Source: Octopus bimaculoides
Taxonomy: Eukaryota
Assembly: GCF_001194135.2 (NCBI RefSeq)
Contig: NC_069004.1
Span: 15,412,178-15,476,177 of the forward strand
Reading direction: 5' to 3'
Length of the DNA: 64,000 bases
Shown here: positions 4,274-63,526 of the stretch, in pieces
Layout: every line of letters begins with the position of its first letter
How positions within the stretch are numbered: the first letter of the stretch is position 1
Made by a program: the position numbers and the translations under genes
Notes under the pieces: generated by a model
The model's input: the letters and a program-made list of their open reading frames with translations, nothing else
What the model was told of the DNA's origin: nothing
The model's database searches: none

Positions 4274-4320
<47 letters not shown>
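4059..4320. repeat. (TA)n/(TATG)n microsatellite spanning an N gap
   Basis: Direct inspection. Confidence 0.95.
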
Positions 4321-23283: not shown

Positions 23284-23307
23284 ATGAATGCTGAACAAAT
23301 TAAAAAG
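23284..23307 (+). CDS. PHYHD1: PHYHD1 coding exon 1 (MNAEQIKK)
   Basis: Acceptor tgcag ending 23239; in-frame TGA upstream of ATG; donor gtattt; joins in phase 0 to FNDEG. Confidence 0.8.
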
Positions 23308-26300
23308 GTATTTAATTGAATTTAATTTAGCTCTTAGAAGGCAAATTATGAGTAAAAACCAAAAAAAAACTACAACAGTAACAAATATTCTTTTGTACTC
23401 TAGGCACAAGGCCCGAAAATTTTTAGGGAGGAGGCCAGTCAATTAGATCGACTCCAGTACGCAACTGGTATTTAATTTATCAGCCCTGAAAGGATGAAAG
23501 GCAAAGTCGACCATGGCAGAATTTGAACTCAGAATGTAAAGACAAACGAAAATACCACTAAGCATTTTGCCCAGTGTGCTAACACTTCTGCCAGCTCGCC
23601 GTCTTCTTTTCTACTATAGTCACAAGGCCTGAAATTTGGAGGGAGGGGACTAGTCGATTACTTCGACCCCACAACAGTAACAAATATTACACCATCTTTA
23701 AGTAAACAACAAGATATCAATGATATCAATGATATGTTGGGGTGTGGGGGTTACATGTAATTTTCCCTCCAAATTACCCCCTTCTGATTCCATGCAGATT
23801 CCTTGGATCCTTTAATTTAGTTTTTAGTTTTGTTAACTTATAAGAGAAATGATAATATTGTAACACTAATAATATTCTTTCCTACAGTGTATTAGAAAAG
23901 AATTCAACAGTATTCAATCTATCCTTCCTTGTGTTATTCATTCTGCTCTCCAAACATTAACTAAAATATGTCGCCTTTTTTACCTTTACTTGAAATTAAT
24001 TTCTGAAATCATCATTTGGCTATCAATATTCTATTTACTTAGTCATATCGAATATGTACCTTCAGTTATTTCTCAAAACTTTTAATTTAAAAACTATCCT
24101 AAATCTTCCTTTTGGATTTTTTGTTTCGTACATTTTTCAGTTGCTTTCATGTTTATAATGAAATTTTATACATTGAAGCTGTGAAATTTTTCTGAAGACA
24201 TCATTATTTTTAAAAAAAATTAATAATAAAATTAAAGATTAAAGGTTAATGTGATTTTTTTTCTTTATATATATTTACAATTCTGTATTGATGGAATATC
24301 AGTTCTTTTTACAACATGCAGGATGAAACAAAATCATTTTATTTTTCATCTTAAAAATCAATTTTATAAAAACTAAAGGGTAAATTAAAACCTGTTTAGA
24401 AATTTAGCAGTTTCTCTTGTAGCAAACATATAGACAATAAGATTTCACACCTCCCCATTCAGAAACGTTATGGCCTGTGACAACTGATCTCTTGAAAATT
24501 CGTAAATGGATGTTTTTTTTTTTTGTTTTATAGGATGGAGTTTATCATCCCTTTTACTTTTTATTTGGTATGGAAATTATCTTAGATATGATGACTTCTT
24601 TAAATAAAATGTTGGTTTGAAAACAAGGAGAGTATATTCCATTAGAAATATAAGAAATAGGGAGGTGGGGGAAGTTGAAACTGTGTATATGTGGGTGCAT
24701 ATATGCATCTTTGCATGTATATGTACCTCTGGGTATGTAAATGTGTGTGTATGTATATATGCATGGATATATATATATACTTCAAAAATTTAATAAAAAC
24801 ACGAGTGGGCAAGGGAATAGAGGGGGAAGTTTCATAAGAATGTGAAGGGAGATGGTTCGAGATGGGATAGAGATGACTGTAGTAAGTGATGGTGAAAGAA
24901 ATGGGAGTGGCACAGGAGTGGGGGTCAGGGTTAGATATGTGAGGGCAAAAGGAGTGATAGCAGATGAGAGAGATATTAAGGATGGAGTATAGCAGAGGGG
25001 AAAGAAAGTAATGGAATGGAGTATATCTTAGGGGAGAGAGAGAGAGCAGTGGGTGGAGGTATATGAAGGAGGTGATTGGTGGAAACAGTGGACAGGGAAG
25101 ATAATGATACATGGAGGTGGTTCTGGGGTGAGGAAGAGGAAGGTAACCAAAGGGAGGAGATGAAGTATGTACCTCTTCTGCTTTCAGGTGTTTATGGCAC
25201 CCAAATAATGCTATGAATAGAGAAGGAATGAGATGTGAGAGAAATGCTTGGCGGGGCAGAGAGAATGGAGGTGGAACTCAGCCCTGCATATACAAGTATT
25301 TACCAAGCACTGGTGATGGTGCCACATAAAAAGCACCCAGTACACTCTATAAAGTGGTTGATGTTAGGTAAGGCATCCAGCCATAGAAACTAAGTCAAAA
25401 CAGACTATGGAACCTGGTACAGCCCTCAGCCTTTCCAGTTCCTGTGAAGCCATCCAACCCATGCTAGCATGGAAAATGATGATGAAGTGTGTTGGGGGTT
25501 GAATCTTTACCAATCAGTTGAATGATCTCAATAAATTCTGCATTAATGTTATTAAGCTGGTACGGAGGAACTTATAAGTATCTGTCACTAAATATAAAAA
25601 ATATGTTTTCATAATTTTTTAGCTGATCTTCAGGTAAATCCATCTGCTCTGATTAATTTGTGTTTGTTGTGATATTTTTTTTTAATTTAAATTTTAAAGT
25701 TAACATTTCCAATTTTGAAAAATATAATTCTTTTATAATTGTTAAAATATATTGACATGAATTTTAAAATACCTTTACTGTAGTATTTCTAATTTTCATA
25801 ATTTATTTTCAGTTTAATGATGAAGGAGTTTTGGTAATTCCAGACTTTCTGTCTCCAGCTACAATTGAGGATTTACGAGATGAATGTTCTAAGATTTTAG
25901 ACAAAATTGACGACTCTGAGAATTTGTCTATCTTTGATACTGATAAAGTATGTCTTCATTTTAGTCTTTGTTTGTTTGTTTGTTTTAACAGAAATTTCTT
26001 CCAATTTAACCCTTTTGCATTTATAGGAACTGTCTCCAACCTAAATAACTCTCTGTTTTATCTTCAAACTGGCCAGATCCAGCCTCTCACACTTGTCCTA
26101 CAATATTATTCTAAAAATAAACAATCATGTCATCAGTGTCTGCTTTGGCATAGTTTCTATTGCTGAATGCCGTTCCTAATGCCAACCCAGCTATTGAAGC
26201 TATGCCAAAGCAGATACTAGATCCTGATGCAGTCCTTGGACCATTTAGATTACAAAGTTATTTACCAGTTTCAAACTTGCCAGTTACTGATTCTTTTGCA

Positions 26301-29300
26301 TTTTTGATGGCAAGAGTGACAAGGAAGTATTTGTAATTCACTAGAGAACAAATATTACAAGGAACTTCATGTGACAAGCACAGTTTTCTTGTTTTGGTTT
26401 ACTTATTAATATACATTAGCAAAAGATACATGGTGGTGGTGGTGGTGGCAGATGTGGCAATGGTGGTGGGAGTGATGGAAGAGGAGAAGAAATTTTTTAA
26501 AATTTTTTTGCAAATAAATTCTTTTTGAATTTTGTATAATAAATAATAAATAATTTGAATAAATTAGATTATTGCGAATAATTAAAATTTTATTTCACAG
26601 AAGCGAACTGATGATTATTTTTTAACAAGTGGTGACAAGATTCGATTCTTCTATGAAAAAGGAGGAGTAAAAGATGATGGTATGTAAAATTAAATGTCAA
26701 AGGTTTAAATTTATTTATTTGTAACATCACCAGATGGGATGTCTTTTGTTCTATTGTTTAACCTTATGTCTCATGTCTTCTGTTATAATGTCTTATATTT
26801 ATAACATCACTAGAGATTATATCTTGTTATATTGTACCAGATTTGATGTTTTCTATTATAATGTTTTCATTCTATAACAGCGGTTCTCAACTGGGTTGCA
26901 TATGGCCCTGAGGGTCCATATAAAATTTTGGGGAGTCCACACAACAGAATAGTAAATATGAGATCCACAATAGTATTTTAAGGGCTCCTGAAAATTTTTT
27001 CTTTAGATCTATGGATTGGTATGTATTGCAAGAAACAACTAGGTTCAACCTATACAAGTTAATATATGAAAAATGAAATAGGAATTTTGAAAGAAGTTTC
27101 TATAAAACTAATTTTTAGACATCAAATGGCTATGGGGGTCCATCAGAATAAAATAGTAATGAAAGGGGTCCAAAGATAAAAAAATGTAGTAGCTGCAGGC
27201 TGGACAATAACATTAATGAGATCAATGATGAAAAAAAATGGTATTAATGAGGGAAGGCAGACGATGCCTGCCGATCGCTGCTTCTCTAAAGCATTGTTCT
27301 TTTACAAAACACACAATTTGAAGTAATAAACCTTTTACTAATGTTCCATTGGACACAAGATCCTTACAATGAGGCATTAAACCTCTTACCAAAAATAACA
27401 CAATGACCTTACAAATGAGACATTAGGCCTCTTACATTTTCTCTTATAGGCCATATATGCCCTTTCAGTATGAGGCACTCAGCCTGTAGAAAGAGACAAA
27501 TGATAACAGGTGTAAGGAATGTATTTGTATGAAATGTTGGGTATACAATTTACATGTAAGTAATGAAATAAAATTTTTTTAATGTTTTTATTTGGACTGG
27601 GTTGAAACTTATGAATATATTTACAAAAATAACAACATTTTATCAAACTGTTTGTTCTGTTTTTTGTTTCAGGAAAATTAAAAGCAATTCCCCGTTTGTC
27701 AGTCAATAAAATAGGTCATGGTAAGTGACTCTTCCTTATAAATATGTTGGTCAATATTAGATAAGTTAAAAGGCAGAAATGTTAGCACACCGGGCAAAAT
27801 GTTTAGTGGTATTTCGTCTGTCTTTATGTTCTGAGTTCAGATTCTGCCGAGGTCGACTTTGCCTTTCATCCTTCCGGGGTTGATAAATTAAGTACCAGTT
27901 GTGTACTGGGATCAATCGAACCGACTGGCTCCTCTCCAAAAATTTCGGGCCTTGTGCCTAGAGTAGAAAAGAATATCAGATAAGTAAAGATTCCACTGAG
28001 GTTGACTTACCTGTTGAACACTGAGGTTGATGTAATTGACTTATCTCCTACCCCAAAATTGCTGGCCTTGTGCTTCACCTTAACCAAACGTATACACACA
28101 CAGACACACATTCACATAGATATGTATGTGTATTTGTACATGTATGCACATGCCTTCATATCATTGTATATGCATACGTCACATATTTATATATATTCTT
28201 ATTCTTGAATTCATATAACAAATTTTGGCTGTCATTTTCATTGTGTTACTGTGTCTCTCCTTATTTGTAGCTTTACACCTGCTGAATCCTGCTTTTGAGA
28301 AAGTTTCCTTCAGTAAGAAGATTCAGGTAAGTTAACTGTGCTATGTCAAGGGGATAAGTCCAGTTTTAAATGTTCCTTTTGATTTAAAGAACTTTGCTAC
28401 TGCTGGAGTATCTATATGAATATAGAGTTTATCAGATTGAATGACAATGAAATGGGGATCGCATTCATCGTTGTCATTTCTGTTTCTCGATGCTGTGTCA
28501 TCTCATCTGTGAAACTTAAATGCAGATAACTGATTTCATTACTTATTCCCAAATGACTGTCAAACGTCGCCTTAAATCATCTCTATTCCCGCCATCTTGT
28601 AATCTTAACTTTTCCAAACTGCGATTCATAAATTCACCTCAGCATTGGCCAAACCGACAGAGTTAACTACCTTGCAAACAATAGGTGTTGACGCCTTTAA
28701 TGACACCGCCTTTTCTCTTTAATCCTATCCATGTCACTTAATTCATCCTTCAATTCACACTAAAAATCAGTTCTCTCCATAGATCTATATTTGATGCCTA
28801 TTATTCATTGTATCACATTTCTTGATATCCTTTATACAGTGTATCTATTAGATATGCTGTAACCTGAAGCCATTGCATACCTTACAGAAAATCTTATAGA
28901 AAGAGGAATATTTCACTTTTCAACAGCTGCCTGACTTTCTTCTGACTGTTTTAATATTCTGGTCACTATCATTTTACTACTCGCACCTCCAACGGTAATT
29001 ATCTGAATGAAAGAAACTATATATCACATCCAACAAGTCTGTAGGCTTCATTCCAGGACACAGTTCTAATGGACACCTAACTGTACATTAAATTCCTCAC
29101 AGAATTCAATGTCATTTATTGTGCTACTTGTAGCAGACTTGAATCTTTCATTAGCTGGTTACACAACCCTTTCCCTGTGGATGCATTGCAGTTACTCACT
29201 TGGTAATCCTGACTTGATCTAGGATTCCTCCACTCAGCATCAATGTAAGAAGTACCGTTTGCTCAGTTGAGCTCTTCTGCTACCTCTTCACAATCCGCCA

Positions 29301-32300
29301 TGTTGCAGTCCCATGACTTCACTATATCCCTAGCAGGGTGGCTGAATGGCTGCTATGCCTTGCCAAAGGGTAGCCCATAACTATTTAGGGTCCAGTCTTC
29401 ACTTCCTGAGATATTTTCAAATGCCCACATACCCACATCCATATCACTTCACTTAAATTACAGAAGTTTTAATAAAAAGCATGAACACCAAATAATTTCT
29501 GTTTCTATGTGCAGTTAATGACATTGACTTTTACATGCATGAAGAAATCAATTTATTTTCTGGATAATTTTGTTTCGTTTTCTTACAGGACATTGCTCAA
29601 TCACTCGATTACAAAGACCCAGTTATTGTTCAAAGCATGTACATCTTTAAGGTAAACAATCTCTCTCACTTTCTGTCTGTCTGTCTCTCCCTATATAGAT
29701 ATGTGTATGTGTGTATACACACACACACACACACACAAGCAGGGTTTGGACAAAATAATGGAAATGTCATCTTATTTAACTATTTTTACCTTCACCTTAG
29801 CAAAGGTGGAGGTATTGTTTTCAGTCGTGTTTGTTTGTTTGTCCGTGGACAAGATATCTCAAGAACTGCTGGATGGATTCAGATGAAACTTTCAGGGACG
29901 TTTGGATTCATGACGGGCGAAATGCTTAGTGGTATTTCATCTGTCTTTACATTCTGAGTTCAAATTCTGCCGAGGTCAACTTTGCCTTTCATCCTCTCAG
30001 GGTTGATAAATTAAGTACCAGTTACGTACAGGAGTTGATCTAATTGACTGGGCCCCCCCCCTCCCTAAAAATTTCGGGACTTGTGCCTAGAGTACAAAAT
30101 GATATTATTGTGAATGATTATTTCTAATTAGTACCAATGTTAATGAGTGATTAGCTTTATAAAACTTGAGGAGAGGTAGAGTTGTATTGTAAGATTCAGG
30201 GTTTTTTTCCTAAAAGGGCCAGCAATACAAGGAAGATAACTCTGCTCACTAGAACCTCATCTCCTCTTTCTCAAATATAATTCATAGATATACTTCATTT
30301 ATTTCTGGAAATGAACTGATAATTGCTTTTTCTTTTGTAGTAGTAGTTTAATCTGGAAGAAGGATAGGTTGTGTCCATTGTCTGTTTTTTTTTTTTGCAA
30401 GGCTTCTGGTGAAGTTCATGTGGTTGAAAGCTGCAGGAAAACAAAAAAATAAAGCATGTGTAAGGAAGGGATTTCAGAAGATTGGCCTTCTAAGGAGGAG
30501 ATACAGAAAAAAGTGGTTAGTGTGGGGGCAATGGGATGGAGTCCAGAAATATGGGTGAGGAGAGAAGAGGAGTACCTGAGGTAGCACAAGATCAGCCATT
30601 TGTGAGTAGAAAAGAAAGACTAGAGATAACATGTCAATGATGTGAAATATCATTAAATAAATATGATAAATACAACCTTTACTTCAAATTTGTCAGTAAT
30701 TCGTTTTTATGATGTTATATTTCAGCAACCTCATTTTGGTGATGCTGGTAAGTTATATATTTTATTTGATTAAAATCACATTAATCAATTCAGCTAATGT
30801 TATCTTTTCTTCATGTCATTAAATATCAACAGTAACTTCACATGAAAATAGTGTCGCTGAGTAATTATCTACAGTGACTTTTGTTTTTTTGTTTTTAGAT
30901 ATGTTAATAGTCACTGGATATTTCCATCTCCTTCACAGGTCAAAAGCTTTAGAGCTGCCATTATCAACGCCAGCATAATAAAAGGTAGAACAGATAAAGA
31001 TAGATATTGTGGGGGTGGGTTGATGTTTGTTGTGTAACATGGAAGATGTCCTCAGCAAAAACCTTTACAGACAAGGAACAATAGTACAAGGTTGTACAAC
31101 AGCAATGGAGTGGGTGCAGTAGATGTACTATTAACTATTTGTTGTTGTTGGCACTCCGTCGCTTACAACGTCGTGGGTTCCAGTTGATCCGATCAACGGA
31201 ACAGCCTGCTCGTGAAATTAACGTGCAAGTGGCTGAGCACTCCACAGACACGTGTACCCTTAACGTAGTTCTCGGGGATATTCAGCGTGACACAGTGTGA
31301 CAAGGCTGATCCTTTGAATTACAGGCACAACAGAAACAGGAAGTAAGAGTGAGAGAAAGTTATGGTGAAAGAGTACAGCAGGGTTCAACACCATCTCCTG
31401 CTGTAGCCTCGTGGAGCTTTAGGTGTTTTCGCTCAATAAACACTCACAACGCCCGGTCTGGGAATCGAAACCGCGATCCTATGACCACGAGTCCGCTGCC
31501 CTAACCACTGGGCCATTGCGCCTCCGCAACTATTAACTATAAGATGGATACAGTCATTGAAGTAGCCAGAGAGAGGGATAAGATAATCAAGCTTAGGTTA
31601 GCTATTGACACCTTGACAGGAACATTAATCTCAGTGTATGACCACAGCCAGGATTTTGAGCATTTGAGCAGAAGGAGAGCATCTATGAACCCCTTTGTAG
31701 ACTACCTCAATGATCCAATGATAACAAAAACCGAAAGAAAGAAAAGTTATGTTATTGAAAGTTTTTCACTTAATTTAGAAACTTTTGGTGATTTCTTTCT
31801 TCCTTAAAACAGTTTTTTTTTTTAAGACAATAAAATGAGAATTCAATGCTTTCAATTTTATTTGTAGTGAATTCACATCAAGATAGTACATACCTGTATA
31901 CAGAACCAATGAGTCTTTTAGGTTTCTGGTTTCCTTTACAAAATGCCACTCGGGAAAATGGATGTTTGGCATACATACCTGGATCACATAATAGTAAGTA
32001 TTCTAAAATATATTTTCATTAAAATTTTTTTATCCTTTGATCATGTGTTGATTGAAATACATTTCTTTATAGTTTTAAAACTTATAAGCAATTATTATCA
32101 GATTCGTTAGAGTTTATTAATAAGGAAATGTATAACAGGTATATTACTCAATATTTAAGTCAGAGTTTAGTATGGTGAAGACCTCTTACAGTGGCCATGC
32201 TGGAGCACCACCTTGAAGAACTTTTAATCAGATGAATCTATCTCCGTTCTTATTTTTAGCTTACGTTTGGTACTTACTGTATTTTCCTCTTTTTGCTGAA

Positions 32301-35300: not shown

Positions 35301-35710
35301 TGGCCTGCAATCATTACTCTTGAGTTGTATATGCAGCTATTTATTTTTTTGCTCAGGAGCCCGGGTGGAAAGTAAGGTTAGTCACAAGGGTCCTGATCTG
35401 AGAGGGTTAAGAAAGAATGATACATTAGAATGCTCTTAATCATAGCTCTGCTGTATGAAGGGTGACCAGGCTAAACAACAAGATACTTAAGTAAAGGGTA
35501 AACTCTAATTTCCTATTTTACTACAGTTCTGAAACTTTCACCCAATAATAATCAGATTTATCTGGTACTTATGTTGATTTTCTCAGTATTCTAACTCAGA
35601 TCTTTTCAGCTAGCTAAAACTATTTCTTAAATTCTTTCTGTTTATACAGGTTACAGCCAACTGCTGACTATTCCTTTGCACATCTCTACAGAAAAGATTC
35701 CAGTCATTAA
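23284..35710 (+). CDS. PHYHD1: Phytanoyl-CoA dioxygenase domain-containing protein 1 (2OG/Fe(II) oxygenase), 11 coding exons, 286 aa
   Basis: join(23284-23307,25813-25947,26601-26679,27673-27720,28271-28326,29589-29651,30726-30747,31868-31993,32712-32831,34764-34890,35650-35710) = 861 nt; all introns GT-AG, phases compatible. Motifs [43 protein letters not shown] (HxD), [38 protein letters not shown] match PHYHD1. Confidence 0.95.
25813..25947 (+). CDS. PHYHD1: PHYHD1 coding exon 2
   Basis: ttttcag|[45 protein letters not shown]|gtatgt. Confidence 0.92.
26601..26679 (+). CDS. PHYHD1: PHYHD1 coding exon 3
   Basis: tcacag|[26 protein letters not shown]|gtatgt. Confidence 0.95.
26878..27180. 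mobile_element. hAT-type MITE, right end missing
   Basis: Left TIR CAGCGGTTCTCAAC and GGGGTCC subterminal motifs; no right TIR. Confidence 0.6.
27673..27720 (+). CDS. PHYHD1: PHYHD1 coding exon 4
   Basis: tttcag|(G)[15 protein letters not shown]|gtaagt. Confidence 0.93.
27767..27971 (+). mobile_element. Abundant SINE copy with TSD in a PHYHD1 intron
   Basis: TSD AATATTAGATAAGT (27753-27766) / AATATCAGATAAGT (27972-27985). The family has well over a dozen copies in this window. Confidence 0.85.
28271..28326 (+). CDS. PHYHD1: PHYHD1 coding exon 5
   Basis: ttgtag|(A)[18 protein letters not shown]|gtaagt. Confidence 0.93.
28760..29440 (-). mobile_element. LOA/I-like LINE remnant, possibly including RNase H region
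   Basis: Homologous to 10740-11210; downstream degenerate peptides resemble RNase H segments (LG.YA..FQ.E, I.IY.D). Confidence 0.45.
29589..29651 (+). CDS. PHYHD1: PHYHD1 coding exon 6
   Basis: ttacag|[21 protein letters not shown]|gtaaac. Confidence 0.95.
30726..30747 (+). CDS. PHYHD1: PHYHD1 coding exon 7 (22-nt microexon)
   Basis: tttcag|QPHFGDA(V)|gtaagt; needed to restore phase between exons 6 and 8. Confidence 0.9.
31139..31528 (-). mobile_element. Full-length tRNA-derived SINE with 12-bp TSD
   Basis: TSD ACTATTAACTAT at 31127-31138 and 31529-31540; A/B boxes; (CAA)n tail. Confidence 0.93.
31868..31993 (+). CDS. PHYHD1: PHYHD1 coding exon 8 (HxD iron-binding motif)
   Basis: ttgtag|[41 protein letters not shown]|gtaagt. 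Confidence 0.96.
32712..32831 (+). CDS. PHYHD1: PHYHD1 coding exon 9
   Basis: aattag|[39 protein letters not shown]|gttatt (weak donor, phase fits). Confidence 0.85.
33495..33900 (+). mobile_element. LINE remnant (third copy of the LOA/I-like family)
   Basis: Reverse-orientation homologue of 10740-11210. Confidence 0.55.
34764..34890 (+). CDS. PHYHD1: PHYHD1 coding exon 10 (distal His, 2OG-binding Arg)
   Basis: ttccag|(G)[41 protein letters not shown](W)|gtttgt. Confidence 0.95.
35650..35710 (+). CDS. PHYHD1: PHYHD1 terminal coding exon
   Basis: atacag|[19 protein letters not shown]; AATAAA at 35788-35793. Confidence 0.92.
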
Positions 35711-47020: not shown

Positions 47021-47053
<33 letters not shown>

Positions 47054-49090: not shown

Positions 49091-49105
49091 ATGACTTCGG
49101 ACATG
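49091..49105 (+). CDS. RBM18: RBM18 coding exon 1 (MTSDM)
   Basis: ATG ACT TCG GAC ATG|gtaagt; phase 0 fits exon 2, which has no ATG before the RRM. Confidence 0.75.
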
Positions 49106-52100: not shown

Positions 52101-55100
52101 GTGGCAGATGTGCAGGAGCAATAAAAACTAAGAACACATCAGAAATAAATTTTCTTAAATGCCCAGGAGGATCCTTAGAGGTAGTAGACAGTTTCTGTTA
52201 ACTAGGTGACCAAATTAGCAGTGGAGGAGGTTGTTCTAAAAATTAAGTTGTTAGAATAAGAACCAGCTGGAGGAAGTTCAAAGAGCTATTACTTCTGTTG
52301 ATAACAAAAGGTCTCTCAGGATGAAAGGTAGAGTGTATGCTACTCCTCTTTGTAACTATTTCCGAGTCAGAGCCTTTTAAACAGTCCAGCTCATGCCAAC
52401 ATGTATGTTAAGTGATGATGATGAATGCACTATTAATTTGAAAGGATCAAATGATTCTAACCAAGTTCTTGAAGAGTTTGCATGTAATACTAACTGTTTA
52501 ATTTAATATCTATTCAAAATACACCAAATGTCTTTTTCAGTGAAATACTGCCTTTCTGTTGCTGTATAAATATAATTTATCAATATAAATATACCTTTCA
52601 GATTTGCTTTACTTAAAATCCTTCAGAAATTTGGTAATCTTTTGAAATTTGATTTGATGTACCACAAATCAGGACCAGACCAGGGTAAACACAGAGGATA
52701 TTGTTTTGCTACTTATGAAAATAAAGAGGTGAGATCATTTACTGAGATTTCATTTAATTTAACAACTGCTGGGTTTGACTTTATTGTTTTCATTGTCTTT
52801 ATTCATTTTATGATAAACCACAGTTTAAAAAAAAAAAGGTGTCAACATTTATTGTTTAGTCCATGTTTCATCATCTCTAAAATGAAATCTAATTATGATT
52901 GTTATTTGTTTACTTTCAGGAAGCAAGTTATGCCTGTCAATGTCTTGATGGGAAGCTTCTTTTGTCAAAAAACTTATCTGTCAAGTTGGCACATTCAGAT
53001 AAAGATGTATGTTTTTATTACTTTGTTTGTATAATCTATATTCGTTAAAATGTATCAGCATTGTGCTGTTGTTGAATATTTAAGAAGTTTCTTTCGGCAG
53101 CAAGCTGGCAGAATCATTAGCACGCCAGGCAAAATGCTTAGCAGCAGTTCATCTGTCTTTATGTTCGGAGTTCAAATTCTGCCAAAGTCAACTTTGCATT
53201 TCATCTTCTTTAGTACATTTTTCTTTAGTGATGAAAGAAATACAAAACATTCTGTTAGAAATTATTTTAATCTTGGTCTTGAAATGAATTTTCTTTTTAA
53301 TTACAAAGTTAAAAAACAAAATTTTGTTTTGCACTTAGTTTTAGTTGTTTTAACTTCTTTGCATCAGTGAGGGAAAATGTTTAAACTATAAAAAGAATTG
53401 AAAAATTATAATTTTTAAAAATATCTTCATCTTATACCATGGACTACAAAGTTTTGTGGAGAGAATATTATTATGCTGAAACCCAGTCCTTGTGCAATAA
53501 TACCTTGATATACGAGTTAATTCGTACCCAGAGAATGCTTCAACAAGTGAAAACTCATAAACAGAAAATCAAACTCGTAAAAGCTTGTAAACCCAGTGTC
53601 TCCTATTTTGATGATCCCAAACTAAGAATATAAAGGGAGGTAACTAAATACTACAAACCATTTAGTTCAGGTGATTTGTAATTTTAATGGCTTTATTAGA
53701 GAGTGGGGAAAATGGCAGCACCTCTGACCCTTTACAAAAAAGTTTCCGTGACTAGTTAGAGGAAGAGGTTATGGTTGGGTTTGGGATGTTGCTTGAATGC
53801 TTGCAGCAGAATAGACTCTGGTCATCCAATGCTCAGATGGTGATGTTAAATCAGGCAAATGAATTCATTCTGTCACTCTTAAACAGGAATGGTCCCTTTA
53901 ATGGCTTTCTGCATCGTTTCACTCACAAAACATTAATTAACTGATGCTATGATAATAGGTTCTTGTTTGTGGTGTCATGCAGTTACACTGAACCTGAAAT
54001 CAAGTAGCTGCACCTAGCCATGTCTGCACAAATGAATACCTTTAGTTCCAGTTTCCTTCATCATTATCATTATCATTGTTTAATGTCCACTTTCCATGCT
54101 GGCATGGGTTGGACGGTTCGACTGGAAACTGGTAAGCTGAGGGGCTGCACCAGGTTCCAATCTGATTTGGCAAGGTTTCTACAGCTGGAAGCTCTTCTTA
54201 ATGCAAAAAGCCTTAAACTTCATGGCTCCATTATGTAATTGATGAGAAGCACTCACAAGATATTTTAATATGGCAGCTAATGGATAACAGAATTGATAGA
54301 CTGTTCGGCAAAATTAGCAGTATTACTTCTTTTTACATCCAAGCAAAATCAGTTTTTGCCTTGCCTTCTTGATTTTTTATTTGTTTTATCTTTTTTATTG
54401 CAGCAAAATATCGGCTTACCATTAACAGTAAAAGTCTTGAAAGAAGATGCCAAATTAAGCAATATAGACAGTAATTCAGGACTAAGGTTAGTTGAAAGTA
54501 TTCCATCGATTTGACGGGATTTTTTTGTCAATTTTACATTTGAGAAGTTCTTGATTTCATTAATGGAATAAGCTGACGATAACAGCATTTATTTAGTCTA
54601 ATCTATATTTGTTAGTTTCTTAAATAACAAAATTATTTTTTTGTTTCTTTGGTCAGTAAGTGTTATTTCCTATTTGCTTCTACTCTTTTACTTTTTTACT
54701 TGTTTCAGTCATTTGATTGTGGCCATGCTGGAGCACCGCCTTTAGTCGAGCAAATCGACCCCAGGACTTATTCTTTGGAAGCCTAGTACTTATTCTATCG
54801 GTCTCTTTTGCCGAACTGCTAAGTTACGGGGACGTAAACACACCAGCATCAGTTGTCAAGCGATGTTGGGGGAGACAAACACAGACACACAAACATATAC
54901 ATACACAATTAGATTGGAGCCTGGTGTAGCCATCCGGTTGCACCAGTCCTCAGTCAAATCGTCCAACCCATGCTAGCATGGAAAGCGGACGTTAAACGAT
55001 GATGATGATGATGATACATATATATGACGGGCTTCTTTCAGTTTCCATCTACCAAATCCACTCACAAGGCTTTGGTCGGCCCGAGGCTATAGCAGAAGAT

Positions 55101-56963
55101 ACTTGCCCAAGGTGCCATGCAGTGGGACTGAACCCGGAACCATGTGGTTGGTAAGCAAGCTACTTACCACACAGCCACTCCTGCACCTATCTAGAAATCA
55201 AAAGAAAAGACTACTATTCCCTTCAAACTTTGCTTATATGACCTGGACATCAATGTTTTGAAACCGTCCTATTTTCCGTTACATTTCAGACAGATTCAAC
55301 ACTGAGTTGCTGAAGCAGAAATATTTTAACAACATATATTCTGTTCAGCACTAGAAATTTGCTTGTCAGTTGCTTGACCTTAACCACTTGAGCATGTCTC
55401 GTAATGACTGATGATGAGCAGAAGTAGTGGGAGAGCATCATAGCCACGTGTTGAAAGGGATTCTTTGGGGTTTGAATAAATGTAACAAAAGCAAAGTTTG
55501 AAGGAAATATTAGCCATCTTTCATACTTTTAGGGTAAGCAAATAGGAAATAACAGTTGCTACCCAAGGACAAAACTTGTGTTACATAGTGTAATAGCTTT
55601 TATTCCATTGTCTTTTAATATTTTACAGAGCATTTTTGCCAATCATGATACAAAGTTAATTTTTTCCCTTAATTTACATTTGTTTTGTTGTGTAAATATA
55701 GTAGAATGGTTTTACATTTTTTTAATTTGTTTTATTGGAACATTTTTATTGCTAAGTACACTGTTTGTTACTGAATTGTCCAGTAAAACTTGTCAGTCAG
55801 AGCCCAGGAGCAAGTAAACTGTTAACTGTACTAAAATCCGAACTTGCAATTCCTAAATTATTTCAAATTGCACTAAAATATTTTCTTGCTGAAACATTAT
55901 TAATGAAAAGGAAGTTTCAAACAAAAGAGATGTAAACTCTGAAGTTGAATTGGCAGGAAACCCATTAAATGTGGAGGAGTAAGGAAAATGATGAAATAAT
56001 TAGATCAAACTGGATTGATTTCATCATCATCTTTTAACATGTTTTCCATGCTGGCATAAACTGGATGGTTTGACCAGAGCTGGTAAGGTCAGGGGCTGCA
56101 TCAGTTTCCATTGTCTGTTCTGGCATGGTTTCTATGGCTGGATGCCCTTCCTATCAATGGTTGAGAACCACTGGTTTACATGAAACAATAAAAAAAAAAG
56201 TCATTTGGAATCATTGTTAGTTGTATTGTTTCCTGTTTTAAACTTTGCTCCAGCTTTTGATATGACATCAATATATTTGTAGGAAACACCTGTGCCCCAC
56301 CTCTTAAGTGTCAGGTATTGTTTCCCAACACATCCCTTTGTTCCAGTGATGACCAGGTCTCAAGATTGCTAGATTTGAAGGCGGTGGGCTGGCAGAATCG
56401 TTAGCACGCTGGGCGAAATGCTTAGCAGTATTTCGTCGGCTGCTACATTCTGAGTTCAAATTCCGCCGAGGTCGACTTAGCCTTTCATCCTTTCGGGGTC
56501 GATTAAATAAGTACCAGTTATGCACTGGGGTTGATGTAATCGACTTAATCCCTTTGACTGTCCTTGTTTGTCCCCTCTATGTTTAGCCCCTTGTGGGCAA
56601 TAAAAAAAATAAAATTGCTAGATTTAAGAGAATCAACTTGTTTTGTGGCAGAACATGAGTTGCTAAGTTTCATTTCATAAAACAAAAAGCCAAGTTCTTA
56701 TTAGAGGAGTTCCCAAATTGTTTTCCTTTTCGACGTTTCTATTCATGCAGCATTATTTTCCTTCCATCTTTTGTAGCCGAGAAAGTAAAATCCGAGCAAT
56801 TGAAGCAAAACTTCGAGCGATGGAAGAAAGTCAGAAGGATTTCACTTACTCCCTGGCCCCTGCGGCAGCACCAGGGACCAGTAAATGGTGCTCATCTCAA
56901 ATGGCATCCACTCGAAAACCACAAAATAATAAACCTTACAGACGAACTTTTTCTAAAAGATGA
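49091..56963 (+). CDS. RBM18: RNA-binding motif protein 18 (single RRM), 6 coding exons, 195 aa
   Basis: join(49091-49105,50615-50703,52602-52728,52920-53006,54404-54486,56777-56963) = 588 nt. RNP2 RLWIGNLDPRVTE, LLKILQKFG, HKSG, RNP1 RGYCFATY, CLDGKLLLSK and C-terminal KIRAIEAKL match RBM18. Confidence 0.95.
50615..50703 (+). CDS. RBM18: RBM18 coding exon 2 (RNP2)
   Basis: ttgcag|PTYLPAPPQDPNAADQCRLWIGNLDPRVT(E)|gtaagt. Confidence 0.94.
50824..51026. mobile_element. piggyBac-like MITE
   Basis: TTAA|CCCATTAGCATT...AATGCTAAAGGG; family also at ~2780-3232, ~58170-58196 and ~63060-63282. Confidence 0.7.
51300..52360 (+). mobile_element. Degenerate RTE LINE fragment with internal duplication
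   Basis: IQFNFVPGRSTTDAL, ELLYADNLVLLAE and LGDQISSGGGC motifs; a ~90-bp segment is repeated at ~51725 and ~51935. Confidence 0.85.
52602..52728 (+). CDS. RBM18: RBM18 coding exon 3 (RNP1)
   Basis: tttcag|FALLKILQKFGNLLKFDLMYHKSGPDQGKHRGYCFATYENKE|gtgaga. Confidence 0.96.
52920..53006 (+). CDS. RBM18: RBM18 coding exon 4
   Basis: tttcag|EASYACQCLDGKLLLSKNLSVKLAHSDKD|gtatgt. Confidence 0.94.
54404..54486 (+). CDS. RBM18: RBM18 coding exon 5
   Basis: ttgcag|QNIGLPLTVKVLKEDAKLSNIDSNSGL(S)|gttagt; its phase-2 end matches the last exon. Confidence 0.82.
54681..55188 (-). mobile_element. Near full-length CORE-type tRNA SINE with a nested SINE fragment
   Basis: tRNA-like head (GGCTGTGTGGTAAG...GGTTCAGTCCC), MIR-like core CACCTTGGGCAAGT; nested piece ~54910-55012. 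Confidence 0.88.
56377..56613 (+). mobile_element. Young SINE copy with 12-bp TSD
   Basis: TSD ATTGCTAGATTT at 56365-56376 and 56614-56625; CpGs retained. Confidence 0.9.
56777..56963 (+). CDS. RBM18: RBM18 terminal coding exon
   Basis: ttgtag|RESKIRAIEAKLRAMEES...KPYRRTFSKR*; AATAAA at 57038-57043. Confidence 0.92.
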
Positions 56964-57759
56964 GGAACTCTTTTTTTTTTCTAAAGAAAGGAAGAAACAT
57001 TAAAAAGACCATTTTTCTAAAAAAAAAAAAATTAATTAATAAATGATATGATGGACCATTTTTCTAAAATAAAAATGAATGGTCATTTTCTGAGAGGTCC
57101 ATTCAAAGAGTACCACTGTCAGCACTGCAATGACAATAAATTTAATTCCTGTAACAGAACGGAAGCGAATCTTGTCCATTTCTGCAGGTATTTCTGTATT
57201 ATTTTTTGTCCAAGTTTCAACTATTTCAGGTAACTTCATGTAATATAGTTTTAGTTNNNNNNNNNNNNNNNNNNNNNNNNNNNNNNNNNNNNNNNNNNNN
57301 NNNNNNNNNNNNNNNNNNNNNNNNNNNNNNNNNNNNNNNNNNNNNNNNNNNNNNNNNNNNNNNNNNNNNNNNNNNNNNNNNNNNNNNNNNNNNNNNNNNN
57401 NNNNNNNNNNNNNNNNNNNNNNNNNNNNNNNNNNNNNNNNNNNNNNNNNNNNNNNNNNNNNNNNNNNNNNNNNNNNNNNNNNNNNNNNNNNNNNNNNNNN
57501 NNNNNNNNNNNNNNNNNNNNNNNNNNNNNNNNNNNNNNNNNNNNNNNNNNNNNNNNNNNNNNNNNNNNNNNNNNNNNNNNNNNNNNNNNNNNNNNNNNNN
57601 NNNNNNNNNNNNNNNNNNNNNNNNNNNNNNNNNNNNNNNNNNNNNNNNNNNNNNNNNNNNNNNNNNNNNNNNNNNNNNNNNNNNNNNTTATATTTTTATA
57701 TGTATTATTCCAAAACTATGACACCAATAAGTTCCATTTCAGTATTTATGGTATGTATG

Positions 57760-57801
<42 letters not shown>

Positions 57802-58549: not shown

Positions 58550-60279
58550 TAGATATATGTCTCGTATTTACATCATACATACAGTTCATATTTGAGATCC
58601 TTTCCATGGTCACTCTACTGAGAATAGCATCTAAATCTCTCTCAAATATGGAGTGGTTTTGATGATAGACCTGCTTACTCAAGGCTGACCTGGCAAAACA
58701 CTATAATCAAGGCTGACCCAGACTAAACCATATAATCTTTGATGACCCAATAAGGAAGATCCTCTCTGTTGGGTTTAATGGTGGTTAATCAGCTGAACTT
58801 GTATTTGCATCATCATCATTTAATGTTCATTCTCCACGGGTTGTGCTTGAGTATTCCACAGACGTTTTTGCTAACAAATCCAAGCACAACCTGCATAATT
58901 GCCATAAATCTACCTAAATTATTCACGCATTAATAAATTCTGTGTTGTTGCACTTTGCAGATGTTTTGATGATCAGGAGCCGTACAAATAATCACTTTGT
59001 TGTTTATTTGAAAGTAAAATATATTTATGCATCCGGCTGTGAAATATGCAGCAACAAAACCCCAGCCCACAACATTATCCATTGTATCCCTTGTTTTAAG
59101 CTGGTAGGGTGTGGTTTTAGGGAAAATGGGTTAGTATTTCTAGCAGGTCGAGAAACAAAATAGAAGGCTCTCGCCACCACTATATCATATCGTTGGTGTC
59201 CGAGAGATGGTAGATATATTAAATGCTACTTTCAATCAAATTGTTTATTGATAGGCTTGGGAGCTGATGAATATAAGGTTAGAGAAATGCAGTGATTTCA
59301 GGAAAATAAGAAAAGAAGCAATCATAAAAGCATGTGTTTAGGGGAAGTTCATTCTCAGTATATATTTTAATTCCAGGATAGATCTGACGCACTAGACATA
59401 TGACCTAAGACGTTCCAGCAGAGACAACCCGTTTTTCTTAAAGACATCGTGTATCTAAGATTGAGGAAATAGCGTATGTTTTGAGGGAGATTTGGATGTT
59501 GTTTCCAACTGGTGCAGTAGCCATGTAAAAGTTGTTTTACATAGGGCAATTTGTATCTCATCTAATGTGATTCCAATTGGCAATCTATTGCGACCATGAA
59601 TTAAAAAGAATAATAATAATAATTCCATTATTTCTTTAATTTTAATTTTACCATTTTAATACAAAGAAAACAGGTAAAAAAAGAGAGAGAGAAGAAAAAA
59701 TAGGGAGGAGGAGGGGGGGGGGGGTAATGCAGCAAATGGAGGATGAAGAGACGATGAGCCGCGCCCTAGTATAATATCCGCGATGGTGTTGCTCCAGAGA
59801 AATGCCAGCGAGACTCGCTACAGCAGCCACTGCACCTCGCGGAGCTCATTTCTCCGACGGGGCTCCGTTATCCCTACTTTGCAGAGGAAATCAGTAGTAT
59901 AGGATTTGGAAACATGACGGTGAATAGCCAGGTCCCAGTCATCATCATCATCATCGTTTAACGTCCGCTTTCCATGCTAGCATGGGTTGGACGAAAGATA
60001 CCTTAATGTAGGCCCTGGGTAGGATTGAACCCTGCCCAGGATGTTCAATGTGGCTGTCTAATTATGTCTCTACCCATGAGACCACCAACCGGTATTTATT
60101 GATTTTTCTTTCCTCAGAGTTAGGGGGCGACGAGACAAAGGTCTGTAACTGATGAAGCTTGTATTAAATACATATTCAAAACTATAAATATTAAATCCGT
60201 TGAAAGGTTGTCGTAGCGAAACCGAAACGGATAAAATCCAACCCGATCTAGACACTTTCTTTGTCTGGGGTTGAAGAAT

Positions 60280-60376
60280 TAAACCGGAAGCTGCAGCAAC
60301 AAAAATACACACTTCCGGAAACTGCGGCGACAGGAATAGCTAACTTCCGGTAATATCATCATTCGGTGAAAATGGC
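60280..60376 (+). promoter_or_regulatory. PSMB7 proximal promoter / 5' UTR with three ETS-type cores and a YY1-type motif
   Basis: CCGGAAG 60284-60290, CACTTCCGG 60310-60318, ACTTCCGG 60343-60350, AAAATGGC over the start codon; TATA-less, CpG-rich. Confidence 0.6.
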
Positions 60377-60433
60377 TTCGACTCTCGTATCTTTCCCTCA
60401 TAAATCTGGATTTGTTTTTGAAAATTGTCGTCG
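60372..60433 (+). CDS. PSMB7: PSMB7 exon 1 (propeptide)
   Basis: [20 protein letters not shown](R)|gtaagt. Confidence 0.93.
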
Positions 60434-63400
60434 GTAAGTAATTTTTGTTTCAGTAAATACGTTATCAATCATTTATATGTCTACTAGAATCAATGTACTT
60501 AGTATATCTTTAAACAATCGTCTTTTATATACGATGAATCCGTGTTTGTTGGATGAACCCAAATGACTCCTTTATTGACTCGCGAACCAGCGATTCCCAT
60601 TTTATTTTATTAAGTCCCAACACTTGTAGTATTATGGATAGTATATTTTAGTTAAACAGTAGCTATCCTGGAATAATATCTAATGTATTTAACCATTTTT
60701 GGCTGTCAAAACGAATTGTGAAAGTTACTGGCAGTGTTTATTATTTTGCTGAATCATTGTATCAAAGAAACTCAAATCAGAAAAATGTGCCAATATTTTT
60801 AGATCATTTGAGCTTTTAGGTTTTGTGGGAAAATTTAAAACTAAATAAAAAAAAAAACAGAATTCTGCCAAAAATTTTTTTAAACCAGCTTTAGAAAAAA
60901 CTAATTTTATTCAACAGACAAATCTCAACTTAACGTTGTGAAGGATATTCTATTGTGCTAGTTANNNNNNNNNNATTCAACAGACAAATCTCAACTTAAC
61001 GTTGTGAAGGATATTCTATTGTGCTAGTTACTGTTATTCCTGTAGACTTTATTTGTGAGGGTTGGTGAAAAAATTGACCCGAAAAACCGCTATTCTACAT
61101 GATCTGTCCCTTCATTTTCCTGCCCCCCCCCCCCCTATCATAGCGTCGATCTTGTTCTATGAAGGAAAAAAATTGCCAGTGCCGCCAAACTCCTAAGGAA
61201 AAATTCCACTTTTTGAAAGCCGTTTATCATCAAATATACTGAAAATCCAGATGAATTGGGTTTTTTTTTTGTGTGGTGGTGGTGGTAGTGTGTTTAGCCC
61301 TAGGTCAACCTTGCTTCAATAGATCTATAAGTATTCCAGCCATGACTCTCCCGTCTGTTTCCTGGGCAGTGTGTGTGCAGGACTACGTTATTTAATGTGT
61401 CCTCTAATTAATTAATTAATTAAATTGTGTCCTCTAAACAGTGGGTTGTTATATGAGAGTGATTTAGCTGCTATTTCTAACCTACGAATATAGACTCACT
61501 TTTGGCTCGTATTGGGAGTCAGAAATGTTTCTTCTTTATACGTTGAAGTAAATGTACTTCATTGTATGATAAAAGCTCAAAATGAAAATTTTCGTATATT
61601 GTAATTAGCCATACCTAAATCTGTTAAAGAATTGAAAATAGTTTCTTGAGCCACTATAACATAATATAACTAGTATTAAAGAACACATTATCTCAGTGCC
61701 ATCTGGATAGTGTATTTAATAGAAATATAGGAATTTTTTTGTTTGTTTGTTGCAATTTCATATTGTGTAGTCAGGAATGAGTTGCCATAATAAACAAGGG
61801 AGTTAGTGAGGACCATAGTTGAGGAAGGAAGAAAAAACAGAGAACTTATATTTCTTAACAACTGGGAGTTTCCATTTCTTTGCAATATGCTAACTGAATT
61901 CCCCTATTCTATAATAATGATAATTGTCTGTCATAGGCGCAAGGCCCTAAATTTTAGAGGAGGGGCTGCTAGCCAATTAACTTAATTTCAGTGCTCGGCT
62001 GGTACTTTATCAACCTCAAAAAGATGACCATGGCAGGATTAGAACTCAGAACATGAAGCTGGAAGAAATCCCACTGAGCATTTTGCCTGACATGTTAACG
62101 ATTCTGCCAGCTTGCCAGCTGCTAATAATAATAATAATAATAATAATAATAGTAATAGTAATAGTAATAATAATAATAATAATAATTTAATCCTTTCTAT
62201 TCTAGGCATAAGGTCTGGGATTTTATTGAGAGGGGCTTGTCAATTACACTGACCCCAGTGCACAACTGGTACTTATTTCATTGACCCGAAAGAAATGGCA
62301 CCTAACATTTTGTCCTGCATGCTAATGATTCTGCCAGCTTGCTACTTTAATAGTAATAATAATAATAACTGATGTGTGGCTAAGTGGTTAGTGTATTTGG
62401 CTCACAACTGTAAGGTCGTGAGTTCAATTCCTGACAGCTCTCGAGCAAGGCACTTTATTTCACATTACTCCAGTTCACACAACTGGCAAAAATGAGTAGT
62501 TCCTGTAACCCAATGAGTCAGCCATGCCACATTCTGTATCATGCTGAATCTCTCTGAGAACTGCACTAAGGGTACGTGTATCTGTGGAGTGCTCAGCCAC
62601 TTTCACATTAATTTCATGAGCAGGCTGTTCTGCTGATTAGATCAGCTGGAGTCCTTGTCATCATAATCACCGGAGTGCCAGCTAATAATAACTGATTTTT
62701 TATTCACCAAAAAGATGAGAAATTGAGGACATTACCAAAGTGAGTTGCAAAAACAGTGGGAGGAGATCAAATCATGTAAAAACCTTTAATTACATGTGTT
62801 TTCCTTCTTTATTCTTGATTGTGTTGTCACTAAACATAAGGGAAAATATCCTCCCCTCTACCCCCTTCCTATTTTGTCACCTCCCTTTAATGATTGTTGT
62901 TATTTTCTTACAGGAATGCTTCTTTGACTAATAATGGAATTACTCTGCCCCATGTCTACAAGACTGGAACTACAATAGCTGGAGTTATTTTTAAGGTAAC
63001 TTAATGTTTTAAAATTGTATTTAGTTCTTTACTGGAGAAATGTGTTGGTGAAGATTTGTATTTTCACTTTACTATTCAGATTAATTCATCAAAATGTAAT
63101 GCTTATTATCCACATTTTAAAAAATTATTCATGTATCTTGTAGCTTTGAGATTTTTGAAGATGTGCTTGTTTATTTTTAGAATAACATTGTTGGGTAGGT
63201 GTAAGAAGCTGGGTCTGGTTAGTTGCAATATAAAAGAAACAGAATATTTGGGCTGGATATGGCCATTTTAAATGTTAATGGGTTAAGCAAATACAGATTA
63301 ATGTACACTGAAGTAGATTATAATACTGTATTATTAATACACACAGTAGTATTGATGTCAGATGGATTCTGAAATGGATTTGTATCAGGGCTGATGAGTT

Positions 63401-63526
63401 AATCTCTTCTCTGTTTCTTTATTTTTAGGATGGTGTAGTTCTTGGAGCAGATACAAGAGCTACTGAAGACACTATTGTAGCTGACAAAAACTGTGCAAAG
63501 ATCCATTATATGGCTGACAACATTTA
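60372..63526 (+). CDS. PSMB7: 20S proteasome subunit beta type-7 (beta2), exons 1-3; gene continues past the window end
   Basis: join(60372-60433,62914-62995,63429-63526): [25 protein letters not shown]...KTG|[36 protein letters not shown]. 39-aa propeptide; catalytic Thr1 (codon 62969-62971), Asp17 and Lys33 intact. Confidence 0.96.
62124..62187. repeat. (AAT)n/(AGTAAT)n microsatellite
   Basis: Direct inspection. Confidence 0.9.
62914..62995 (+). CDS. PSMB7: PSMB7 exon 2 (autocleavage site, Thr1)
   Basis: ttacag|[27 protein letters not shown]|gtaact. Confidence 0.96.
63429..63526 (+). CDS. PSMB7: PSMB7 exon 3
   Basis: ttttag|[32 protein letters not shown](Y)|gtaagt. Confidence 0.97.

Follow-up and report, generated by a model that had tools for sequence, protein, structure and literature searches.

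Conserved pairs of neighboring genes are enriched for 5'-5' orientation and short spacers, a trend that has been ascribed to bidirectional promoters, and HSPD1-HSPE1 exemplifies the co-regulated 5'-5' class of these CAMPs (Irimia et al. 2012, PMC3514665). At the scale of whole chromosomes, the MHC paralogon (human 1q, 6p21, 9q33-q34 and 19p13) traces to a single amphioxus chromosome that corresponds to human chromosomes 1, 6, 9 and 19 (432 genes), with 9q33.2-q34.3 (DAB2IP..EHMT1) forming one block, the 9q33.2 end of which is marked by DAB2IP. On that amphioxus chromosome the proto-MHC genes are dispersed across the full length, and compaction has been argued to be a vertebrate-specific feature; the 'proto-MHC chromosome' in its broader sense has also been described as partly an artefact. 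A third kind of neighborhood, the coleoid-specific microsyntenies, arose through cephalopod genome reorganization.

The run of four genes analyzed here shares features with each of these. As in the MHC paralogon, the four human orthologues lie in 9q33.2-q34.3 and include an anchor gene, PSMB7/10; unlike the octopus run, however, paralogon linkage is chromosome-scale and macrosyntenic, its genes being scattered in amphioxus, whereas a tight conserved block was seen here only for MRRF-RBM18, and MRRF, RBM18 and PHYHD1 have no immune or proteasome role. Like the coleoid-specific microsyntenies, the run is a compact multi-gene arrangement common to two cephalopods in a repeat-rich genome, but it was seen here in two octopods only, and any shared regulation would be hypothetical. 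The closest resemblance to CAMPs concerns the internal MRRF-RBM18 pair, which is likewise non-paralogous and divergent, with a very short spacer (145-550 bp) in three molluscs.

Gene models of the octopus locus

The window, a 64,000-nucleotide stretch of the Octopus bimaculoides genome (CM046624.1:15,412,178-15,476,177), contains PHYHD1(+), MRRF(-), RBM18(+) and PSMB7/10(+) in this order, with GT-AG boundaries at all introns. The four genes are functionally unrelated, housekeeping and intact, and the public O. bimaculoides annotation lists RRF(-), RRM(+) and Proteasome(+) at the window. An earlier note, made from the DNA letters, had described PHYHD1(+), MRRF(-), RBM18(+) and PSMB7(+) as consecutive; their positions, order and strands are all borne out by the exon models, and the limits it gave for the cluster, 23284 and 63526, prove to be the PHYHD1 ATG and the donor site of PSMB7 exon 3, respectively.

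23284-35710, + strand: PHYHD1 orthologue, Fe(II)/2-oxoglutarate dioxygenase of the PhyH family; 11 coding exons, 286 aa, intact
23284-23307, 25813-25947, 26601-26679, 27673-27720, 28271-28326, 29589-29651, + strand: PHYHD1 exons 1-6
30726-30747, 31868-31993, 32712-32831, 34764-34890, 35650-35710, + strand: PHYHD1 exons 7-11
30726-30747, + strand: 22-nt PHYHD1 microexon encoding QPHFGDA(+1 nt), from the Argonauta comparison
48604-38193, - strand: MRRF orthologue, mitochondrial ribosome recycling factor; 7 coding exons, 283 aa, intact
48604-48593, 46377-46134, 44811-44674, 43937-43819, 42050-41959, 39917-39758, 38279-38193, - strand: MRRF exons
49091-56963, + strand: RBM18 orthologue, single-RRM protein; 6 coding exons, 195 aa
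49091-49105, 50615-50704, 52603-52728, 52920-53006, 54404-54484, 56775-56963, + strand: RBM18 exons
60311-60350, + strand: two ACTTCCGG motifs, ETS/GABP-type, 22-61 bp upstream of the PSMB7 ATG
60372-60433, 62914-62995, 63429-63526, + strand: first 3 coding exons of the PSMB7/PSMB10 co-orthologue; the gene runs past the window

The top structure match of the 286-aa PHYHD1 model in the PDB is human PHYHD1 (2opw, E=9.6e-75, residues 3-280), with PHYH far weaker (2a1x, E=4.8e-10), and the model has the HQD and distal His (VVHRS) iron-binding motifs. The Pfam PhyH domain scored E=5.9e-43 on a provisional 284-aa model that still contained a 16-nt exon, since rejected. On full-length similarity, domain and iron ligands, the gene belongs to the PHYHD1 subfamily of PhyH dioxygenases; no cephalopod proteins were returned in the PHYHD1 homology search. 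The 22-nt microexon shows 95% identity over 38 nt to its Argonauta counterpart (QPHIGDA) and brings back the motif MYIFKQPHFG..V.HQD of human PHYHD1; without it, the frame breaks. The 16-nt candidate (31407-31422) also kept the frame and was dropped after Argonauta revealed the 22-nt microexon, a replacement that raised the PDB score from 235 to 255 bits.

For MRRF, the top PDB matches are mitochondrial RRFs (7nsh/6nu2, 3e-32), followed by bacterial RRF at 1e-14, and the Pfam RRF domain is matched at E=1.5e-31. The model is 93% identical to O. sinensis MRRF, an RRF gene is publicly annotated at the same place, and the MRRF homology search gave 6 proteins, with no outgroup MRRF loci among them. 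The translation of the RBM18 exons is exactly that of the NCBI entry 'probable RNA-binding protein 18 [Octopus bimaculoides]' and matches Pfam RRM_1; as the PDB has no RBM18 entry, orthology is based on the named NCBI orthologues and the conserved C-terminal KIRAIEAKL motif.

The fourth gene has its best PDB matches in PSMB7 (2.4e-26) and PSMB10 (7.9e-26), other beta subunits scoring 1e-4 or weaker, and carries the propeptide/active-site junction G|TTIAG in exon 2. The public annotation gives a 275-aa product with Proteasome and Pr_beta_C domains, of which the first 80 residues fall inside the window. Judged from these matches, it is a beta2-type proteasome subunit about equally near PSMB7 and PSMB10. 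The ETS/GABP-type motifs upstream of its ATG may be functional; the proximal AACTTCCGGTAA is kept in Argonauta, equally far from the ATG.

The earlier note had also reported no further recognizable gene among the four, and every search agreed. Public annotation adds no gene between them in either O. bimaculoides or Argonauta, no Rfam families or tRNAs were detected there, and the intergenic ORFs had no Pfam matches among the selected stop-free ORFs scanned at 23-64 kb (16 intergenic, from 35.7-38.2 kb and 57-60.4 kb, plus 4 intronic). On the PHYHD1 side, this gene-dense region adjoins at least 23 kb with transposon remnants only; the Pfam scan of 1-23.2 kb covered most ORFs 45 aa or longer, leaving out a few that are mostly low-complexity.

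Three assembly gaps interrupt the locus:

46791-46800: 10 N, in MRRF intron 1, with an exact 41-bp direct duplication on the flanks
57257-57687: 431 N, intergenic between RBM18 and PSMB7
60965-60974: 10 N, in PSMB7 intron 1, with an exact 56-bp direct duplication on the flanks

None of them touches an exon, and no reading frame relies on one. The exact direct duplications beside both 10-N gaps indicate overlapping contig ends rather than missing sequence. The RBM18-PSMB7 spacer that contains the 431-N gap measures 3.41 kb, compared with 3.46 kb in Argonauta, where no gene is called.

The divergent MRRF-RBM18 pair

MRRF and RBM18 are arranged head to head, separated by a short interval:

48605-49090: spacer from the MRRF ATG (-) to the RBM18 ATG (+), putative bidirectional promoter; 486 bp, AT-rich (26% GC)

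The same RRF(-)/RRM(+) orientation was found in all four molluscs with the pair (Octopus, Argonauta, Mya and Sinanodonta), two of which are bivalves. The ATG-to-ATG distance is below 1 kb in three of them (486 bp in Octopus, 550 bp in Argonauta, 145 bp in Sinanodonta) and longer in Mya (2271 bp). A tiny first coding exon of RBM18, 5 codons long in octopus and 3-5 codons across the molluscs compared, stays beside MRRF, with a following intron of 1.5 kb in octopus, ~20 kb in Mya and ~42 kb in Sinanodonta. In vertebrates, a cattle gene list runs '...LHX6, RBM18, MRRF, PTGS1...' and 'LHX6 RBM18 MRRF' is given at one SNP in goose. We take the vertebrate pair to be divergent as well. MRRF-RBM18 is thus an ancient conserved neighborhood, older than the mollusc-vertebrate split, as demonstrated directly in molluscs and by gene-list adjacency in vertebrates. 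This is the part of the earlier note's claim, that the four genes are a surviving bilaterian fragment, which stands.

The retention of the pair most probably reflects a single short bidirectional promoter shared by both genes, because breakage would then be harmful. Such a promoter would transcribe MRRF and RBM18 together and most probably hold them in place, since a rearrangement that split the two would leave one or both disabled. Both the shared promoter and the selective constraint are putative. In the Octopus-Argonauta alignment of the spacer, short conserved stretches were found beside the two ATGs only, and the spacers of the four molluscs yielded no common housekeeping or promoter motif.

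By adjacency, orientation and short spacer, MRRF-RBM18 fits the known CAMP class, with co-regulation putative. As in CAMPs, the adjacency is kept across distant phyla (molluscs and vertebrates), and, as in HSPD1-HSPE1, one partner is a nuclear-encoded mitochondrial protein. The pair is broken, however, in Capitella, whose RBM18 has unrelated neighbors on both sides (TYW3 and a BTB-Kelch gene), and the 10-kb flanks examined in Amphiura, Paralvinella and Solemya did not reveal it. Our literature search found no discussion of the MRRF-RBM18 pair, its synteny or an RBM18 bidirectional promoter. The pair adds a clean further example of an ancient head-to-head arrangement, and its linkage to MRRF hints at possible co-regulation of the poorly characterized RBM18 with a mitochondrial translation factor.

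Origin of the four-gene run

We favor a history in two layers, with a probability of about 0.75: an ancient MRRF-RBM18 pair, flanked by PHYHD1 and PSMB7 through shared-chromosome ancestry. All four genes would descend from one ancestral chromosome, the source of human 1q/6p/9q/19p, and would accordingly belong to one ancestral linkage group. We propose that PHYHD1 and PSMB7 lie beside the pair because of this common linkage group, as one local outcome of gene-order scrambling.

The human map agrees with common linkage. Human PHYHD1 is at 9q34.11 and PSMB7 at 9q33.3, and RBM18/MRRF are listed among chromosome 9 genes with DAB2IP, LHX6 and PTGS1. As the earlier note had stated, all four orthologues therefore fall in 9q33-q34, more precisely in 9q33.2-q34.11, inside the MHC-paralogous block 9q33.2-q34.3, and PSMB7 is indeed a recognized anchor gene of the paralogon. 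The gene identities on which that placement depends hold, except that the beta2 gene has two human co-orthologues, PSMB7 (9q33.3) and PSMB10 (16q22.1). Location of the human orthologues in one band region is, however, expected from chromosome-scale synteny and alone is no evidence for a local block. A rough estimate for a linkage group of ~430 genes, divided in human among four chromosomes, is that chance would bring three independent units to 9q many times per chromosome.

Evidence on local order comes from other genomes. The complete order and orientation recur in Argonauta hians and were found only in this other octopod, with spacers of 1.9 kb, 550 bp and 3.46 kb against 2.5 kb, 486 bp and 3.41 kb in Octopus. 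The outgroup comparison covered loci of Mya, Sinanodonta, Capitella, Amphiura, Paralvinella, Solemya and Candidula with flanks of 10 kb; squid, Nautilus, a gastropod chromosome, scallop, amphioxus and cnidarian loci lie outside it. At all of the sampled loci but that of Candidula, neither PHYHD1 nor PSMB7 was found within 10 kb of MRRF/RBM18, a range beyond which either gene could still sit in bivalves, where genes are widely spaced. A tblastn search of the 10-kb flanks of the Amphiura, Solemya, Paralvinella and Candidula loci likewise yielded none of the partner genes (MRRF, PSMB7 or PHYHD1), and no MRRF lies near the PHYHD1 of Candidula. In Mya, an RNase_T-like gene takes the place of PHYHD1 on the 3' side of MRRF.

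Octopus (PHYHD1-MRRF-RBM18-PSMB7) and human (RBM18-MRRF-PSMB7-PHYHD1) are not colinear. The bands of PSMB7 (9q33.3) and PHYHD1 (9q34.11) are more distal than that of the RBM18/MRRF pair (9q33.2), and we take this distal side to be the MRRF side of the human pair, which would place human PSMB7 on the opposite side of the pair from its octopus counterpart. Given that PHYHD1 and PSMB7 are absent from the outgroup flanks, that the human order differs and that the amphioxus genes are scattered, chance co-occurrence within one retained chromosome is a plausible account of the run. On the best reading of these comparisons, the immediate adjacency of all four genes can be traced no further back than the last ancestor that Octopus and Argonauta share. 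The earlier claim is thus not supported for the four genes as a single surviving ancestral bilaterian block. Our literature search for at least three of PHYHD1, MRRF, RBM18 and PSMB7 together found nothing relevant.

An unlikely alternative to the two-layer history is a cephalopod- or octopod-specific microsynteny that arose in the coleoid reorganization and is now under selection, for example as a shared regulatory or chromatin domain for constitutive genes. The order, orientation and near-equal spacers in Octopus and Argonauta, members of two families, could reflect such constraint, and this gene-dense region sits beside at least 23 kb of transposon remnants only. The same stability would nevertheless be seen if two related octopods simply had insufficient time for a breakpoint to fall within 40 kb. 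Outside the exons, moreover, conservation was detected only in dispersed repeats and in a short stretch immediately 5' of the PSMB7 ATG, and no functional link joins the four genes.

Quite improbable, in our judgment, is the proposal that the run of four is what remains of a tight 'proto-MHC' neighborhood of the ancestral bilaterian, compact in octopus and spread over ~6.7 Mb in human. It draws on the position of the four human orthologues within the MHC-paralogous block, the role of PSMB7 as a classic anchor, the demonstrable antiquity of the internal MRRF-RBM18 pair and the stability of the block between two octopod families. Against these stand the absence of PHYHD1 and PSMB7 within 10 kb of MRRF/RBM18 in the sampled outgroups, the other gene 3' of MRRF in Mya, the lack of colinearity between octopus and human, and the estimated frequency of chance 9q groupings; the scattering of the amphioxus genes, with compaction argued to be vertebrate-specific, and the partly artefactual nature ascribed to the broader 'proto-MHC chromosome' weigh in the same direction. 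The deeper version, in which the whole cluster, or at least PSMB7 beside MRRF-RBM18, is a relic of a tight pre-bilaterian proto-MHC neighborhood that octopods kept despite coleoid scrambling, is just as improbable and would entail independent dispersal in bivalves, annelids, echinoderms and vertebrates.

Were the four-gene block ancestral, it would be an uncommon case of microsynteny among several unrelated genes, preserved in a genome that ranks with the most rearranged in animals, and reconstruction of the MHC region before its duplication would gain a concrete local anchor. Independently of its origin, the locus now has corrected models for four octopus genes, including the 22-nt microexon of PHYHD1.

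Gene models and the PHYHD1 microexon

Exons were located by tblastn, with approximate human sequences serving as probes only, and the identifications were then re-derived from the window, giving the following models.

23284 (ATG)-35710 (stop), plus strand: PHYHD1, 11 coding exons, all introns GT-AG, 286 aa
30726-30747, plus strand: 22-nt microexon of PHYHD1, encoding QPHFGDA, canonical splice sites
48604-38193, minus strand: MRRF, 7 coding exons, 283 aa
49091-56963, plus strand: RBM18, translation identical to the annotated 195-aa protein
60372 (start)-63526 (end of exon 3), plus strand: beta2 proteasome subunit gene, part within the window

Rebuilt in this way, the models bear out the four genes that the earlier note had named, with their positions, order and strands, and the gene calls are sound; its end coordinate, 63526, is the end of the third exon of the beta2 gene. 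PHYHD1 aligns over its full length with human PHYHD1 (structure 2opw, E=9.6e-75), compared with 4.8e-10 for the paralogue PHYH in the same PDB search. The top solved-structure matches of MRRF are mitochondrial RRFs (3e-32, versus 1e-14 for bacterial RRF); the protein shares 93% identity with O. sinensis MRRF, and its first exon comprises 4 codons (48604-48593), with exon 2 beginning at 46377 on the minus strand. A homology search with the concatenated RBM18 exons identified the annotated protein as NCBI 'probable RNA-binding protein 18 [Octopus bimaculoides]'. The contig carrying its gene (GCA_001194135.2, CM046624.1) matches the window at 100% identity over 18,166 and 6,313 bases flanking the 431-N gap, which places the window at CM046624.1:15,412,178-15,476,177 on the plus strand. 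The fourth gene carries Proteasome and Pr_beta_C domains in public annotation and has nearly the same score with PSMB7 as with PSMB10, the immunoproteasome subunit; it is therefore the pre-duplication co-orthologue of both and not specifically 'PSMB7'.

The PHYHD1 reading frame requires a microexon between 29651 and 31868. With the 22-nt exon in place, the MYIFKQPHFG..V.HQD motif known from human PHYHD1 is recovered, and the gene that we built in Argonauta hians contains a microexon of the same length (QPHIGDA, at ~22008-21987 of locus L009, minus strand), with 95% identity to Octopus over 38 nt of this region. A 16-nt candidate at 31407 was dropped in favor of the 22-nt exon, which is conserved in Argonauta and gives a better PDB score (255 versus 235 bits). 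Gene predictors could easily overlook an exon of this size. Because a homology search returned no cephalopod PHYHD1 protein, the public octopus model of this gene may be absent or wrong.

The divergent MRRF-RBM18 pair

MRRF and RBM18 lie head to head in Octopus, with 486 bp between the start codons and a spacer of 26% GC. Three other molluscs share this arrangement, RRF on the minus and RRM on the plus strand: the start codons are 550 bp apart in Argonauta hians, 145 bp in the unionid Sinanodonta woodiana and 2271 bp in the clam Mya arenaria. The vertebrate pair is probably divergent as well. The first coding exon of RBM18, which adjoins MRRF in both Octopus and Mya, has 5 codons in the former (49091-49105) and 3 in the latter (10001-10009 of locus L005), and the exon 2 donor follows '...ITE/VTE' at an identical position in the two species. 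Intron 1 differs greatly in length, measuring 1.5 kb in Octopus, ~20 kb in Mya and ~42 kb in Sinanodonta, with HSP20 (small heat-shock protein) genes nested within it in Mya (L005 15846-33489) and Sinanodonta (L011 28790-29395 and 42569-43156); retention of the tiny exon beside MRRF despite these differences would be expected under shared promoter constraint. The two bivalves with intron-nested HSP20 genes are distantly related, and the 1.5-kb octopus intron contains none.

Positional gene lists from GWAS papers place LHX6, RBM18, MRRF and PTGS1 consecutively on cattle chromosome 11 and give 'LHX6 RBM18 MRRF' at one SNP in goose, and a human study includes both RBM18 and MRRF among neighbouring chromosome 9 genes. 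The pair does not occur everywhere: RBM18 in Capitella is flanked by TYW3 and a BTB-Kelch gene, and searches of the ~8-10 kb upstream of RBM18 detected no RRF in Amphiura, Paralvinella or Solemya. Irimia et al. (2012, PMC3514665) describe conserved ancestral pairs in which the 5'-5' orientation is enriched and spacers are very short, features ascribed to bidirectional promoters, and MRRF-RBM18 fits this class in both orientation and spacer length. We therefore infer a putative bidirectional promoter for the pair, in whose spacer no shared motif was found.

Age of the four-gene order and 9q33-q34 co-location

The full order, PhyH(+), RRF(-), RRM(+) and Proteasome(+), recurs in Argonauta with spacers similar to those of Octopus (1.9 vs 2.5 kb, 550 vs 486 bp and 3.46 vs 3.41 kb, respectively), and so dates back at least to the common ancestor of the two. 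It was not found outside octopods among the loci retrieved with 10-kb flanks. Probing with PSMB7, PHYHD1 and MRRF by tblastn yielded nothing else in the 10-kb RBM18 flanks of six species, nor anything in the PHYHD1 flanks of the snail Candidula; in Mya, an RNase_T-like gene lies 3 kb from the 3' end of MRRF. With flanks capped at 10 kb and no squid, Nautilus, scallop, amphioxus or cnidarian locus among those compared, these negatives leave the order unsupported outside octopods but do not prove it missing there.

The human positions cited in the earlier note hold: PHYHD1 at 9q34.11, PSMB7 at 9q33.3, and RBM18 and MRRF listed with DAB2IP, at the 9q33.2 end of the block. The region 9q33.2-q34.3 belongs to a set of four human blocks (1q, 6p, 9q and 19p) that match a single amphioxus chromosome, with 432 such orthologues there. 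Nakatani et al. warn that the extended 'proto-MHC chromosome' is in part an artefact of reconstruction. If the linkage group, but not gene order, was kept in octopus, any neighbouring conserved genes would have orthologues on 1q, 6p, 9q or 19p. Counting MRRF-RBM18 as one of three independent units and assuming a 25-40% share for 9q, we estimate, as an approximation of our own rather than a computed null, that ~2-6% of triplets would be all-9q, amounting to several to tens of runs per chromosome with ~400 such genes. The three human positions span ~6.7 Mb of a ~16-Mb block, an unremarkable spread. Order also differs: PSMB7 lies on the RBM18 side of the pair in octopus and, we presume, on the MRRF side in mammals. 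Together, the blocks shared with one chromosome, the expected all-9q runs, the span and the differing order leave standing the counter-reading that the earlier note itself had named, co-occurrence by chance within a single retained chromosome.

Thus, where the earlier note proposed a surviving fragment of an ancestral neighbourhood, common chromosomal ancestry and the ancient MRRF-RBM18 pair, divergent in Argonauta, Sinanodonta and Mya, are upheld, but extension to all four genes over-reached, the flanking genes having been seen beside the pair only in octopods; that the whole block is ancestral is very unlikely. The adjacency is what macrosynteny ordinarily produces, with the addition of one conserved divergent pair of a known class.

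Gaps, intergenic content and repeats

1437-1844, minus strand: RVT_1-matching ORF, E=6e-5
18019-18360, minus strand: RVT_1-matching ORF, E=6.7e-10
46791-46800: 10-N gap within MRRF intron 1
57257-57687: 431-N gap, intergenic, between RBM18 and PSMB7
60965-60974: 10-N gap within PSMB7 intron 1
60311-60318 and 60343-60350: ACTTCCGG motifs (putative, ETS/GABP-type), immediately 5' of the PSMB7 start codon

No reading frame crosses any gap. The 41 bases before the gap in MRRF are repeated exactly after it (46750-46841), as are the 56 bases before the gap in PSMB7 (60909-61030); such duplications imply that contigs with overlapping ends were joined through a spacer, so that both gaps are probably unmerged overlaps, the true sequence likely being continuous and single-copy. 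The Argonauta spacer equivalent to the 431-N region is of the same length and contains no gene. Neither the O. bimaculoides nor the Argonauta annotation calls further genes between the four; stop-free ORFs from the two longer spacers between genes and four long intronic ORFs had no credible Pfam match, and no Rfam families or tRNAs are present between the genes.

Across the 23 kb 5' of PHYHD1, only the two reverse-transcriptase fragments were found, and no cellular gene was recognised in 1-23,200. A third ORF (9111-9446, plus strand), without a Pfam match, resembles by eye the C-terminal region of a non-LTR element; all three are retrotransposon remnants. A long (AT/TA)n-rich microsatellite (4130-4320) surrounds a 70-N gap (4204-4273). 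An interspersed repeat of ~55-70 bp occurs in several introns and spacers (54957-55015, 54059-54132 and, inverted, 59939-59994) and, at non-orthologous places with 80-89% identity, in Argonauta locus L002 (4910-4980, 11027-11078, 19202-19263 and 24409-24470); it probably represents a SINE- or MITE-like element that octopods share. The PSMB7-proximal ACTTCCGG position is conserved in Argonauta (L002 ~20017-20054), where the distal motif is inverted.
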